Shown here: positions 1 through 11,865 of the stretch, one piece after another
Numbering within the stretch: position 1 is the stretch's first letter
Layout of the letters: every line of letters begins with the position of its first letter
NCBI GenBank assembly: GCA_033442325.1
Contig: JAWQFM010000005.1
Location: 1,372,542-1,436,541, forward strand
Direction: 5' to 3'
Source: Salpingoeca rosetta
Taxonomy: Eukaryota; Protista; Choanoflagellata
DNA: 64,000 nt
Made by a program: the position numbers and the translations under genes
Notes under the pieces: generated by a model
The model's database searches: none
The model's input: only the letters and a program-made list of their open reading frames with translations
Told to the model about the DNA's origin: nothing

Positions 1-3000
1 TCTGCTGCACCAGCAGGTTCACAGCCGCCTTGAAGTCGGGCGACACAGGCGGCGTCAACAGGGAGTCAGGGCCGTCGCTCTTCTTTGTGTGGACTCCATC
101 GGCGTTGACATTGCGGCTGCTCCGGCTGCTGCGGCTGCTGCGGCTGTTGCGGGGGGCCTCGTTTGGGTCCGTGCTGGCGAGTGGCGTCACAACAACGCCT
201 TCTTCGCCTGGGCGGGCCTCAATGTAGTTAATGTCAAACAGCTCGCATCGGCCAGAGGCAAAGGCGGTGGTGTGGCGGAAGGTGGTGGAGGCAGAGGCAG
301 ACAAGCCCGCCTCAAAGTTGGCGCTGAAGGCAAAGTCCAGCAGGCCCGGGAAGCCGAAGAAAAGCTCAGCACTCATCCAGGCGCTGGCTGCAACCTGGGC
401 ATCCACTTCGTCCTGGATGAGACCCGTCTCTGTTTGGAAGGAGCAGCGGCGCAGCGAGCGCACGTCCAAGGCGTTGGGCACGCTCTGGTTGTCGTGTGTT
501 TTGTGAAGCCAGAAGCAGCTCTTGCAGTCTGGCTCAAACACGCGCGCTGGCACCACCTTGCCCGTCACCGTGGACACGCCCATCCCAGGCAACGATGCAC
601 CGGGATGAAGCGGTGGCGATGCAGCACCAGCACTGGTCACGCGGGCTTGCTTTGAGGTCTGGGAGCTGGTGGAGCCAGCGCTGGTGCGAGGTGCCCTGCT
701 GTTGTTGCTGCTGCTGCTGCTGTCACTGCTACTGCTAGCGCTGTTGGCACTGGTGCCGCTGGCGGTGTTGCTGTTGGCGCCAAAGGTAGTAGGAACTGCG
801 GTTTGCGAGCACTGGATTGTTGCGCCTGGCGCAATGGTGTATGTCTGCACGCTGGAGACGACGCCCTTGCATTGGCTGTCCTTGCAGCCGCCAGCAACGA
901 CAACGTCCACACCTCCGGGTGCACTCACCGAGGGCATGGTGACTGCCGGGGCAAACGCGGTGCCCTCGGGAAGGCCGCAGCCAGGGATCCATTCCGCAGT
1001 CGCTCCCTTGACAGGGAGCTGCAGGATGCGCACGTCACTGAGGCTGGCCACGGCGTTCGTGTCTGGTGAGCGGGCTGCGAGGCCAGTTGCATCGCGGCCA
1101 CCCATGATGAGGATGTCGTTGCCCACAACGACGGCGGCGTGCCCCATGCGTGGAGTGTCAGCGCCTCCCATGGGCGGGACATGGGCGTCGCTCCACAGGT
1201 CTGTGTCCACGTTGTACAACAGCACCTTTGCATTTAGCGTGCCGTCCGGCAGCACGCCGCCGACGACGTATACGAGCGAGTCGTTCACCACCGTGCACGA
1301 CATGCCGGACAGGGTGAGGGGCATGGGCTGAACTGTGGACCACGAGTCGGTTTCCGGGTCATACACCTCCGTCACAGGCGTGCCACCGCCAGTAACATGC
1401 AGCGCCCCGCAGGCGACAAACGTGCAGTGCAACTGGCGGCGCGTCTGCATGGGCTCCACGTTGATCCACTCGTTCTTCTGGGGCGAGAAGGAGATGACGG
1501 TGGTGCGGCCACTGGTGTTGGTGAAGGGCGGCCCGGCGCCACCGGTGACATACACGCGATCGTTGAGCACGGCGGCGGAGGCGTTGGCCACGTTGGCGCG
1601 CGGGTCCTGCGAGAGCAGCGTCCATGGCGCCACCCCCTGCAATGCAGCGGATGGGTCCTGGGCGGCTTTGGTTGGGGTTGGCGCCGTTTTTGGCGGCATG
1701 GCTGCGGGGACGTAGCGCTGCACGGCGGGCACATCGGGCAGGGACGCTTGGCTCGCTGTTCCACTGAAGAACAGCACGGCGTTGGCGTTGGCGTTGGCGT
1801 TGGCGGTGGAGATGGAGACGTTGGCAAACACGGCAGCATGGCCTGCCATGGGCTGGAAGGACGTGATGCCCGTGTCTGTGGTGGTCCAGCGAGCAGAGCG
1901 TGGGGGGAGCTTGGGGCAGCCACCCGCACGCGTCTTGCAGAAGTCATTGTTGAGGAAGCGCTGGTAGAGCTGTGCGCGCGTGCCGATAGCTGGGTCGTTT
2001 GGGAAGAAGGCTGGCGTGAGGACGGCGGTGAGGTTCTGCAGGGTGTATGCGACAACGCCCGGGTCCTTCTCGACAGCGAGAGCCCACGCGTTTGCGCCGC
2101 GCGTGAGCTGACCGTGGACGGGCGGGAAGGGGATGTAACTTGTCTGCACGGAGATTTTGCTGGAGTTGAAGGCCTCCTGTTCGTTCCAGCCAGGGGTGCG
2201 GTTGTTGCAGAGCACGTCGTCACCAATGGAGCAGATGTGGTTGAGGGTGGCTGAGGAGTGCAGGTCGCCCGACGTCTTGCGGAGATGCTCGAAGCTTTCC
2301 TGGCTGAATGCGGTTACGCGGACCGACTTGCCGCCAAACTCAGCGTCGGCAACAACGGAGTCGCCGTAGGCGTTGGCAAACTGCAGCATGTCGTTAAGCT
2401 TATCGTTGTACTCGCTCTCGTCGCGCGGGAGCAGCTCGGCCACGTTGGACTTGAAGCCCGCGGTGAGCACGGCGCTGTTGTCGAACGTGTTGCGCTGAAC
2501 ATGATAGCTTGTGCAGGCAATGCTGTGGCGAACGACCACGTTGTTCTTGTTGACCGTGAGCGAGTTGACGGCAGAGAACCAGTGCGTCTCTGAGGATGAG
2601 TGGAAGAGGCCGTGGTGCTCCGAGTGCGTGTACGCGTTCACCACAGACTTGTAGTCAAACCAGTCGTGCATGGCCTTGACTGAATCCGTGAGTCGACACT
2701 GTGTGAGTGCGAAGGGGGCGGGCGGGGAAGGTGAGACAAGAGTTGTCGTTTGGGTGCTGGGCATTCAGACATTTATAGAGATGCAGACACAGATACAAAC
2801 ACACACAAAATACAAACACACACGCATACACACACGCATACACACACGCATACACACACACATACACGCATACACACATACACACATACACGCATACACA
2901 CATACACACATACACGCATACACACACATACACACACATGCACGCATACACACACATACACACATGCACACATGCACGCACATGCACACATCAGGACGCA

Positions 3001-3182
3001 AACAGCACACCTTGAAGTTTGGGAGGTAGGTCCAGCCATCGGGAACGGCAACTGTGCCTTCATAGTGCTGGCCTTGTTCGAAGGAAGACAGGTTGAAGAC
3101 GGCGCTACTCATGAACCCAGGCGTGTTGCACCGTGACGAAGAGCATTGCGGATCGCCATCAATAGATGACTGCAGGGAGATG

Positions 3183-3218
<36 letters not shown>

Positions 3219-3582
3219 ACGGAGTCGTAGCGTATGGGATCATCGCTACAAGTCATTGTGGAACTGCTTCAGCACAGCACCACGGAGAATCACAGGAACG
3301 CTCAACAACAACCCAGCATTCACTCTTGCTTGCAGGCAACCTCGAACAGCCAGCCAAAACGTTTTGGTGGTGCATTCGTTCCATATTGGGTGGTGCCATT
3401 TTGTTGTGTCACCCATGCTAACACAGCATTTGTGACGCGCTTCTTGGGGACTGACATGAATAACTGACCTGGAAAGTGAGCACGCCTTTGCCAACGATGT
3501 CCACGTTGTTTGGGGGCGACAGGGCATGACCTTCAGTGCCAAGGAGGGCGAGGACGAGCACAGCGGCAAAAAGGCCGTGCAT
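1..3582 (-). CDS. Secreted MACPF (perforin-like) domain + Kelch-repeat propeller + probable second MACPF-like domain protein; 3' end lies outside the window
   Basis: Manual model: 3582-3469 (MHGLFAAVLVLALLGTEGHALSPPNNVDIVGKG..., signal peptide-like), 3169-3011 (SSIDGDPQC...PGFMSSAVF...VPDGWTYLPNFK), 2698-<1 (899 codons with no stop). MACPF-like motifs: IACTSY, LTAGFKSNVAELLP, FANAYGDSVVADAEFGG (about 2330-2380), WALAVEKDPGVVAYTLQNL. Kelch repeats: VLNDRVYVTGG...EW, LHVTGG..EVYDPETDSW, VYVVGG..LYNVDTDLW, RMGHAAVVVGNDILIMGG. The 5' exon junctions are uncertain. Confidence 0.8.
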
Positions 3583-4411
3583 CTTGGCATTTAGGGGGGG
3601 GGGGGAGGCAGAGATAGTGGAGTGGAATTGCTTGGAACGAAAGGAAATGGACTCAGTGGCAGTGACAAACGGACGGAACAAGGAAAATGGCTGCTTCTGC
3701 TTGTGAAGGATTGCGACTGATTGCGTGCGAGAGCGTGTGTGTGTGTCACGCCATGACTCATCGCAGTGCTCACCGGTGTTGGAGCAGCATTGCATGGTTC
3801 GAGGACTTCTGCTTCTTGTGCAAACGAAGAAAGCGTGTTGTGTGGAGCGTGGCTGGGATCACATCGGTGGTGGGAGGAGATGTGCTGAGCTGTCGTTGTT
3901 GGCAGCACACTGGTTTGGCCTCGTTATCTCGCTCAACGGCCTCGCGCTCCTGTCGCAGTGCCGTTGTCATCGATTCTTGTTGGCTGTCGCCTGCATTGCA
4001 GCGGCCCGCCGTGGCGTGCATCCGTGTATCAGGGTCGGTTGCTCACACCGTCACCACGTAGAACGAACCAGAAAGGAAGCAAGCAACAATCACAGCTTCC
4101 CTCACATCCAACAAATGTAGGATGTGTGTGGGCCGTGAAGGTCAGGCAAAGAAAGGCGTGGGAAGGGTCAAAATGGGAAACAAGGAAGACACACGTGTCA
4201 TTCAAGGGCACGGTGGAACCAGCGGAATGCTCGTGGAAAAGTTAGGGAGAAGACAAACCGCGCGGAGAATGGGATAGGGGAGCGACGAGCACACCGACAG
4301 TTAATCCGAGGGTCAAGGGACAGACACAAGGCCACACCTTTGTACACACAAAGGTAAACATAGACAGAGAGACAGACAGGCACAGACAGGCAGAGAGCGA
4401 CAGGCAGATAA

Positions 4412-4480
<69 letters not shown>

Positions 4481-4552
4481 AGCACACACACACAGACAGA
4501 GGCACGGGTACGGGTACGACATATGAACGCAGAGGGCCTCATCAAGAGGGAA

Positions 4553-8701
<4,149 letters not shown>

Positions 8702-10899: not shown

Positions 10900-11865
10900 T
10901 TACTCGTCGCCGTGGCGGATGGCAATGTAGTACTCCTTGACCTTGTCGAAGCCAGCGAGCACACCAGCACCAGCGATACCACGAAGAATGTTGGCACCGG
11001 CACCCTTGAAGAAGGAGCCAGCACCCTCGGCCTTCATGATCTGGACGGCGCAGTCAAGGGAGTTCTTGTACTTGACGGCCTCGCCAGAGGTCATCATCAT
11101 ACGACGGCGGATGGTGTCAACGGGGTAGGAGGCGAGGCCGGCGAGGACGGTCACACCGTAGCCGAGCGCAAACGTGGCCATGAAGTTCTTCTGGAGGGAC
11201 TCGCTGAGGAGGGGCTTGAGGGAATCGTACAGACCAAAGTAGAAGCCGCGGTACACAATGATACCAACGCAGGAGATGACAAAGCCACGGTAGAGGCCGG
11301 CAACACCGTCAGAGGCGATGGTCTTGCGGTACACGTCGACGAGGCCGTTGAACTGGCGGGCGCCGCCCTTCTTCTCGTTCTTGTTGTCGTTGGCAAGGCG
11401 GGTACGGGCGTAGTCGAGGGAGTAGACGAAGAGCAGGGAGAAGGCACCGGCGAGACCACCAGAGATCATGTTGCCGACGAACCACATGGCGTAGCCGTCC
11501 TTGTCCTTCTTGAAGTTGATGAGGGCCTTGATCTTGTCCTTGAAGGCAAAGTTGAGGGCCTGTGTGGGGAAGTAGCGCAGCACGTTGGCTGCGTTGCCAC
11601 GCCAGAGAGAGCCAACGCCCTCAGACTTGATGACACGGCCGAAGCAGTCCATCACGCCAGAGTAGGGGCGGTCCAGGGAGCCGGTCTTGAGCATCTCACC
11701 CTGGTTCTGGAGGAGCAGCTTGATGCGCTCAATGGGGGCGGCAGCCGTCTTGGACACGGCGGCGGCAACACCACCAAGCATGAAGTCCTCGAAGAAGGCG
11801 AGCTTCTTCTTGCCAGCGGGCGCGGCGGCGAGGCGCTCGCGGATGTTGACCTGGTTGTACAGCAT
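10900..11865 (-). CDS. ANT: Mitochondrial ADP/ATP carrier (adenine nucleotide translocase, SLC25 family), intronless
   Basis: 321-aa ORF with [57 protein letters not shown] and the RRRMMM signature. Confidence 0.98.

Follow-up and report, generated by a model that had tools for sequence, protein, structure and literature searches.

At the start of a 64,000-nucleotide stretch of the choanoflagellate Salpingoeca rosetta (NCBI GenBank: GCA_033442325.1, contig JAWQFM010000005.1, positions 1372542-1436541; hereafter the window) lies a minus-strand gene with three exons, of which window positions 1-3582 hold the 5' third. The assembly comprises 55.4 Mb in 68 contigs, and the flank beyond the window start was also read. 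Exon 3 runs on into this flank to a total of 2,201 open codons and ends at a stop codon 3,905 bases past the window start (contig positions 1368634-1368636). The spliced product has 2,292 amino acids (aa) and a mass of about 240 kDa. It consists of a signal peptide followed by three modules, called m1, m2 and m3 here, each with a MACPF domain and a six-bladed Kelch propeller. The features of the gene that fall within the window are listed in Table 1.

The ATG at position 3582 opens MHGLFAAVLVLALLGTEGHA/LSPPNNVDIVGKGVLTFQ, and exon 1 is followed by a GT donor (GTCAGT). Exon 2 is preceded by CCCTGCAG, encodes SSIDGDP...PGFMSSAVF...VPDGW...NFK, the motifs of which are kept in the family consensus, and is followed by GTGTGC; exon 3 begins at 2698 after TCACACAG with its AG acceptor. 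Both introns are rich in CA/TG microsatellite, and many long microsatellites of this kind are found in introns and intergenic DNA near the gene (window 2765-3256, 4240-4700 and 5700-6000). The N-terminus aligns with its homologues, including a transcript-derived protein of Diaphanoeca grandis, without a gap over both splice junctions, and the signal peptides coincide. Furthermore, the 2,292-aa product is residue-for-residue identical to its sole full-length match in a collection of 5.8 billion proteins, which is the public gene model of the locus. The gene is therefore annotated, though unnamed. The GT-AG phase-0 boundaries, the gap-free homology at the junctions and the identical public model argue that the exons are joined as modelled.

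Table 1. Features of the MACPF-Kelch gene in the window (TMH: transmembrane hairpin)
Feature	Window positions	Strand	Description
Exon 1	3469..3582	-	Start codon, signal peptide MHGLFAAVLVLALLGTEGHA, first conserved MACPF strand motif VDIVGKG
Intron 1	3170..3468	-	299 nt, GT...AG, phase 0, (CA)n tract inside
Exon 2	3011..3169	-	53 codons, MACPF N-terminal segment (IDGDP, PGF, VF, VPDGW)
Intron 2	2699..3010	-	312 nt, GT...AG, phase 0, mostly imperfect (TG)n microsatellite
MACPF-1 core	1916..2698	-	Exon 3, protein residues 92-352; begins with family-invariant Cys
MACPF-1 TMH1 cluster	2543..2668	-	42 aa, 6 His; conserved in m1 clade; not beta-amphipathic
MACPF signature region YGDSVVADAEFGG	2330..2368	-	Y-G-x9-G-G spacing
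MACPF-1 TMH2 cluster	2153..2302	-	50 aa; clade-conserved Cys pair (C-x8-C)
Kelch propeller 1	767..1834	-	Six blades; low-complexity Pro/Thr-rich insert interrupts first blade
Linker 1 (module 1 to module 2)	605..766	-	Ser/Thr-rich, disordered; module model end pLDDT <50
MACPF-2 N-terminal half	1..604	-	Includes lineage-specific low-complexity insert; gene runs on past window
MACPF-2 low-complexity insert	71..217	-	About 49 aa, including RNSRSSRSSRSSRN, after strand 2; without counterpart in 6 of 6 aligned m2 orthologues

An earlier note on this DNA, made from its letters and a list of open reading frames (ORFs), had described the gene as missed by that list. The frame is indeed absent from it, because the list omits ORFs running off an end, but with an identical public gene model the gene was already annotated. 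The note had also placed all but the MACPF entry segment in one exon of 899 codons and had read the architecture as MACPF - Kelch propeller - MACPF. Both statements hold within the window, where the frame is open for 899 codons from 2698 to 2, through the window edge, and where those three domains are found; the full exon and chain, however, comprise three MACPF-Kelch modules. The signal-peptide-like N-terminus and the MACPF-like entry segment that it proposed are borne out, the former by a hydrophobic segment in exon 1 that aligns with the N-termini of homologues and the latter by exons 1 and 2, which encode it with motifs conserved in the family.

The MACPF-1 domain matches the Pfam MACPF family (Pfam: PF01823) with 39.3 bits against a cut-off of 21.5 bits (E = 1e-9, exon-3 residues 36-231). 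The MACPF domain of m3 also passes this cut-off with 33.3 bits, and that of m2 alone, with 14.3 bits, is below it. A profile of the m2 clade matches perforin-1 at E = 7e-7, and in the orthologue of Salpingoeca kvevrii the best Pfam MACPF stretch is the m2 one. The profile of the whole family matches TgPLP1 of Toxoplasma gondii at E = 1.4e-47, MPEG1 at 1.5e-27, perforin-1 at 5e-25 and the complement proteins C6, C7, C8 alpha/beta and C9 at about 1e-17 to 1e-20.

The MACPF fold was tested for m1. We modelled MACPF-1 alone with AlphaFold2 on a 68-domain alignment, because a Foldseek search with the whole module had returned Kelch structures only. In the model (pLDDT 87.9, pTM 0.86), residues 63-80, 123-139, 184-202 and 253-259 form strands and residues 83-118 and 203-250 form helical clusters, in the order long strand, TMH1 cluster, long strand, helices, long strand, TMH2 cluster, strand. 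Its best matches in the PDB are all MACPF structures, with TgPLP1 (PDB: 5oup/5own) at E = 6.5e-15 and a TM score of 0.72 and the MPEG1 (perforin-2) pre-pore (PDB: 6u2j, 6sb3) at a TM score of 0.67. Further matches are C8 beta, perforin, Mpf2Ba1, C6, GNIP1Aa, Plu-MACPF, C9 and pleurotolysin B. In the ESM Atlas, MACPF-1 has MACPF+PAN proteins, MPEG1, perforin and C6-C8 as structural neighbours, and in the clusters of at least 50 members near it the MACPF domain is paired with PAN, ApeC, C2, LDLa/Sushi, BACON or Vps62, never with Kelch. A protein atlas search with residues 1-760 gave no usable match.

Several Pfam Kelch families match propeller 1 strongly: Kelch_6 with E = 6.6e-21 (74 bits), Kelch_1 with E = 1.9e-19 (69 bits) and Kelch_3, Kelch_4 and Kelch_2 with 46-56 bits, all over exon-3 residues 370-570 (E = 1e-12 to 7e-21). 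Modules 2 and 3 have Pfam Kelch matches as well, weaker ones in module 2, and in a PDB sequence search propeller 1 matches Kelch domains. The propeller fold was tested for module 1, with an AlphaFold2 model built on a 36-module alignment (pLDDT 77, pTM 0.70). This model shows a MACPF domain and a propeller of six four-stranded blades, both confident, and an insert of about 90 residues that is disordered; in the propeller, pLDDT is mostly 82-97 over model residues 450-680, with one dip. Foldseek matches the module to the Kelch domains of KLHL12, KLHL20 and KEAP1 with a TM score of about 0.8 and E of about 1e-19. A cytosolic adaptor of the KLHL type was ruled out as an identity of the protein, which has no BTB domain and carries a signal peptide. 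NanM mutarotase, a label that some sources put on homologues, is unsupported, as NANM matches are below the cut-off.

The about 5-6 Kelch-type blades counted by the earlier note correspond to the six-bladed propeller of the model. Its MACPF core also stood up: for the segment encoded at 2698-1930, where the lack of an HMM match or of the fold was to have counted against it, both were found, the model showing four long strands and two helical clusters. The spacing that it gave as Y-G-x-x-x-x6-G-G is present as Y-G-x9-G-G in YGDSVVADAEFGG. This spacing, the Gly after the Tyr or Phe and the first Gly of the GG pair do not vary among 36 modules. The signature reads YGDSV-x6-GG in m1, FGDAY-x6-GA in m2 and YGLYL-x6-GS in m3, compared with the reference Y/W-G-T-H-F/Y-x6-G-G, and the wider family consensus retains FGTH.

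Over the full chain, Pfam annotates the weak MACPF match (14.3 bits) and Kelch in the middle third and the MACPF match of 33.3 bits and Kelch in the last third. The three MACPF regions are mutually 21-25% identical and have common motifs from the first strand (G-x-G) to the C-terminal Y-C...P-G-C, and BLASTP aligns the modules with one another across MACPF and Kelch for about 400 residues (E = 1e-4 to 7e-8). A Pfam scan at E <= 1 found no TSP1, LDL-receptor A, EGF or Sushi modules and no BTB or BACK domain. The linkers between the modules are long and disordered, linker 1 being Ser/Thr-rich and linker 2 rich in Gln, His and basic residues. Linker 2 holds the sole R-x-R-R of the protein (RIRR, residues 1592-1595), about 10 residues before MACPF-3. 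N-x-S/T sequons are in excess, with 30 observed against 19 +/- 3.8 in shuffles. The N-terminal signal in exon 1 contains the sole 19-residue Kyte-Doolittle window above 1.6 in the entire protein, so there is no membrane anchor, and the protein is predicted from its sequence to be soluble and to enter the secretory pathway.

Word-based homologue searches with the entire exon 3 returned only the protein itself, and those with residues 1-760 returned nothing. As these searches found no family, an exhaustive HMMER search with a three-domain profile was needed, which we ran against 1.84 billion representatives. It gave 190 matches at E <= 1e-3, and in at least 27 of the best 150 the MACPF domain is followed by Kelch repeats. 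Members of the family come from five or more choanoflagellates, from the transcriptome of one diplonemid and from many metagenome contigs. Three modules are present in a complete transcriptome ORF of S. kvevrii from EukProt (P0002, 1,946 aa), in a Trinity transcript of the diplonemid Namystynia karyoxenos (P0007, 2,111 aa) and in three metagenome proteins (P0003, P0004 and P0014, with 2,044, 2,108 and 2,520 aa); for S. kvevrii and Namystynia, Pfam confirms three MACPF stretches with Kelch. An S. urceolata protein (P0017, 1,058 aa) comprises a fragment of m1 and m2, the D. grandis protein (P0012, 703 aa) has one module, and a Bicosta minor protein (P0153, 679 aa) is identical to module 3 of a 2,258-aa metagenome protein (P0160). 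Either the three-module protein of Namystynia means that the family reaches beyond choanoflagellates, or its transcript is a contaminant.

On one genomic contig from a sequencing run, pieces with m1, Kelch, m2-m3 and Kelch lie consecutively on one strand. Gene fission, considered there for the single-module P0010 beside P0005, was rejected, since the pieces are in order on the same strand and are therefore most likely a single three-module gene that a prokaryotic gene caller has cut up. A 23.6 kb JGI metagenome contig holds, at 419-7396, two MACPF-Kelch genes head to head, one with a single module (709 aa) and one with two (1,496 aa); the other genes of this contig have no Pfam matches.

In a careful maximum-likelihood tree of whole modules, with which a quick 40-row tree agrees, m1, m2 and m3 form clades with supports of 100/100, 100/99 and 100/100, and the S. 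rosetta protein places one module in each. The clades m2 and m3 are sisters (93/93). The modules are 18-25% identical to one another and 31-37% identical to their positional orthologues over about 480-610 columns. As the modules group by position, two duplications took place before these choanoflagellates split, and the order has not changed since then. By this sequence phylogeny the order m1-m2-m3 is shown to be conserved across craspedid choanoflagellates, and the modules are to be regarded as old paralogues. In a second lineage, with Namystynia, P0014 and the Bicosta-like P0160, the modules also group by position to some extent, though support is weaker and the branches are long.

The modules differ in the segments that form the transmembrane hairpins in MACPF pores. 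TMH1 of m1 is highly conserved and His-rich, with the clade consensus HDW-DY....TEHH-LFHHSSHTDWFSAIN. Module m1 keeps F-G-G and has Y-IPFPP after strand 4, whereas m2 and m3 have G-A or G-S instead of GG and N-T-C-P-CPP after strand 4. We measured beta-amphipathicity as the maximum 11-residue moment at 180 degrees compared with shuffles, which is a crude statistic. By this measure both hairpin segments are amphipathic in m2 (TMH1 P = 0.04, TMH2 P = 0.003), TMH2 approaches significance in m3 (P = 0.054; TMH1 P = 0.57), and neither segment stands out in m1 (TMH1 P = 0.69, TMH2 P = 0.43). The orthologues tend the same way, several of the values being merely suggestive. A complex prediction for MACPF-1 with MACPF-2 scored 0.26 relative to a mark of 0.34 and counts neither for nor against an interaction.

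Among the known systems, TgPLP1 is the best match of both the family profile and the MACPF-1 structure. Both are secreted protist MACPF proteins with a beta-rich domain C-terminal to the MACPF domain, but TgPLP1 has only one MACPF domain, its beta-rich membrane-binding domain is specific to apicomplexans, and it has no Kelch and no tandem modules. MPEG1, likewise matched in profile and structure, is an ancient bactericidal MACPF protein of animals that is active in acidified phagosomes, and a pH trigger would be in keeping with the conserved His-rich TMH1 of m1. MPEG1 differs in having one MACPF domain, a P2 beta-hairpin domain and a transmembrane anchor, whereas the S. rosetta protein has three MACPF domains, Kelch in the position of P2 and no anchor. 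In perforin, a C2 domain stands where the S. rosetta protein has its Kelch propeller. The complement membrane attack complex (MAC) is hetero-oligomeric and built from paralogous MACPF proteins. Its early components insert little, and the barrel is made by those that join later; by analogy, the three specialised paralogous modules suggest a MAC-like division of labour. The MAC paralogues, however, are separate chains with TSP1, LDLa, EGF and Sushi domains, whereas the S. rosetta modules form one chain with Kelch, and the two duplication series are independent. The BTB-Kelch proteins KLHL12, KLHL20 and KEAP1 provide the best structure matches of the propeller and have the six-bladed Kelch fold in common with it, but they are cytosolic ubiquitin-ligase adaptors with BTB/BACK domains, whereas this propeller lies behind a signal peptide. 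The protein is not of the MPEG1, complement or KLHL type, since it lacks the additional domains or the anchor by which these are defined.

There are precedents for MACPF domains aimed by a propeller. In apple-snail perivitellin-2 (PmPV2/PcPV2) a six-bladed beta-propeller lectin delivers a MACPF pore-former to membranes (bioRxiv 10.1101/2019.12.23.880021). Perivitellin-2 is the closest known propeller-aimed MACPF; its propeller, of the tachylectin/tectonin type, is on a separate disulfide-linked chain, with one MACPF domain per protomer. Bacteroidales secreted antimicrobial proteins (BSAPs) are also secreted MACPF toxins, with a C-terminal domain that sets target specificity, and in some of them this domain is three-bladed (PMC12853789). 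They differ in being bacterial, with a single MACPF domain and another propeller family.

The Kelch propellers occupy the place of target-binding accessory domains, and since propeller-aimed MACPF proteins have these precedents, we read the protein as a membrane-attack protein. With moderate confidence, it would be a secreted or vacuolar protein with specialised modules and propeller targeting, probably a pore-former directed at prey or microbes. S. rosetta, a bacterivore, would release the protein or send it to food vacuoles, where the Kelch propellers would dock the chain on the target surface, probably on a glycan or lipid head group. After docking, the MACPF domains would align side by side, and their TMH1 and TMH2 clusters would unfurl to beta-hairpins that breach the membrane. 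The inserting units would likely be m2, with strongly beta-amphipathic TMH segments, and m3, with a moderately amphipathic TMH2. Module m1, with the GG hinge kept, non-amphipathic TMH segments, a His-rich TMH1 and a Cys pair in TMH2, might serve as a non-inserting or pH-triggered initiator or regulator, a split between m1 and m2/m3 that would resemble that between C6/C7 and C8/C9, on one chain. A more specific form of this proposal is a built-in hetero-oligomeric attack unit in which three diverged MACPF paralogues are fixed at 1:1:1, m1 is a pH-sensing, non-inserting initiator with a Cys-stapled TMH2, m2 and m3 insert, and each Kelch propeller is an extracellular glycan or lipid binder. Such a unit would have arisen independently in unicellular holozoans as a parallel to the sequential C6-C9 MAC logic, used for prey killing or defence. 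In this full form we hold the proposal only tentatively and think it rather unlikely.

Several observations weigh against pore formation. The MACPF signature is degenerate, none of the three modules having TH and m2 and m3 also lacking the second Gly of the GG pair, and the TMH segments of m1 are not amphipathic. The amphipathicity seen elsewhere comes from a crude statistic, with several orthologue P-values between 0.05 and 0.2. We know of no established membrane-binding role for Kelch propellers. In addition, many MACPF proteins are non-lytic, e.g. astrotactins, BRINPs, Torso-like and plant CAD1 (see also the review PMC5483515). The S. rosetta protein could, like these, be a non-lytic MACPF glycoprotein that acts without pores in adhesion, in matrix or theca building, in cell-cell or cell-bacterium recognition or in signalling. 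The degenerate signature, the lost hinge and the m1 hairpins would all agree with such a role, as would the mucin-like Ser/Thr linkers together with the sequon excess, which are typical of matrix glycoproteins, and the use of extracellular Kelch propellers, as in attractin, as recognition modules (Beta-prop_ATRN-LZTR1 is a weak match in Pfam). However, TMH1 and TMH2 of m2 are strongly beta-amphipathic across orthologues and TMH2 of m3 is amphipathic, the TMH lengths of 42-50 aa and the fold with two helical clusters are retained, and the closest relatives in sequence and structure, TgPLP1, MPEG1 and perforin, are proven pore-formers. We therefore regard the non-lytic role as a serious alternative, but an unlikely one.

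Compatible with the pore-forming reading is a polyprotein precursor, in which a kexin/furin-type convertase would cut the chain in the secretory pathway, at least between m2 and m3, so that MACPF-Kelch subunits hetero-oligomerise and the single chain ensures their equal amounts. The position of the lone RIRR in the disordered linker 2 would suit such a cut, and multibasic motifs recur in linker 2 of relatives, namely RQRR in S. kvevrii, RFKRR in the diplonemid and KRRSR in the Bicosta-like metagenome protein. Yet linker 1 of the S. rosetta protein has no dibasic site, two metagenome orthologues are without any R-x-[KR]-R, and disordered linkers commonly hold basic residues, which leaves processing of this kind a doubtful prospect. 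Finally, the gene could be an artefact, either three adjacent genes fused by a chance open frame or a decaying pseudogene, as the sub-threshold Pfam score of MACPF-2 and its low-complexity insert might hint. We consider this highly improbable in view of 2,201 stop-free codons in a genome of 63% G+C, of transcriptome ORFs of S. kvevrii and Namystynia that hold the same three modules on one message, and of the identity that each module retains to its positional orthologues.

MACPF proteins such as perforin, the complement MAC and MPEG1 are core pore-formers of animal immunity and, to our knowledge, little is known of MACPF proteins in the closest unicellular relatives of animals. S. rosetta is culturable and genetically tractable. 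In the literature searched we found no characterised protein of this architecture and no paper on a MACPF-Kelch fusion, on a tandem multi-MACPF protein or on a choanoflagellate MACPF protein, in line with the earlier note, which knew of no characterised protein built in this way. SaroL-1, the pore-former that has been described for S. rosetta, is an unrelated lectin (PMC9468336). New with respect to this literature are the Kelch propeller in the position of the accessory domain and the three specialised MACPF paralogues per chain, in an order conserved across choanoflagellate species. The layout could show how animal relatives build membrane-attack machinery. If the protein forms pores, it would be a tractable model for the evolution of hetero-oligomeric MACPF assemblies with initiating and inserting subunits, it would give Kelch propellers a new extracellular role, and it would be a candidate for an effector with which a bacterivorous relative of animals kills prey or defends itself against bacteria. 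If it is not lytic, it would be a large and unusual addition to the non-lytic MACPF proteins.

On contig C16 of the genome lies another MACPF gene, which looks unrelated (MACPF match at 684340-684735, plus strand, in an open frame of 743 aa). Its product has an N-terminal hydrophobic segment, a Pfam MACPF match with E = 2e-10, no Kelch and about 300 C-terminal aa without an assigned domain.

About 0.8 kb past the stop codon of the MACPF-Kelch gene, a convergent open frame (contig positions 1366870-1367847, plus strand) encodes a SUEL-type D-galactoside/L-rhamnose-binding lectin domain (Pfam E = 1.5e-17). That a secreted lectin adjoins the putative pore-former may be a coincidence. Within the window, an ordinary neighbour at 10900-11865 on the minus strand is an ORF of 321 aa with three mitochondrial-carrier repeats (Pfam E = 8.7e-69). 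Window positions 7501-8000 have a G+C content of 0.22 in surroundings of 0.45-0.66, with a GC skew of +0.62 and an AT skew of -0.52, and look like a strongly strand-biased low-complexity tract.

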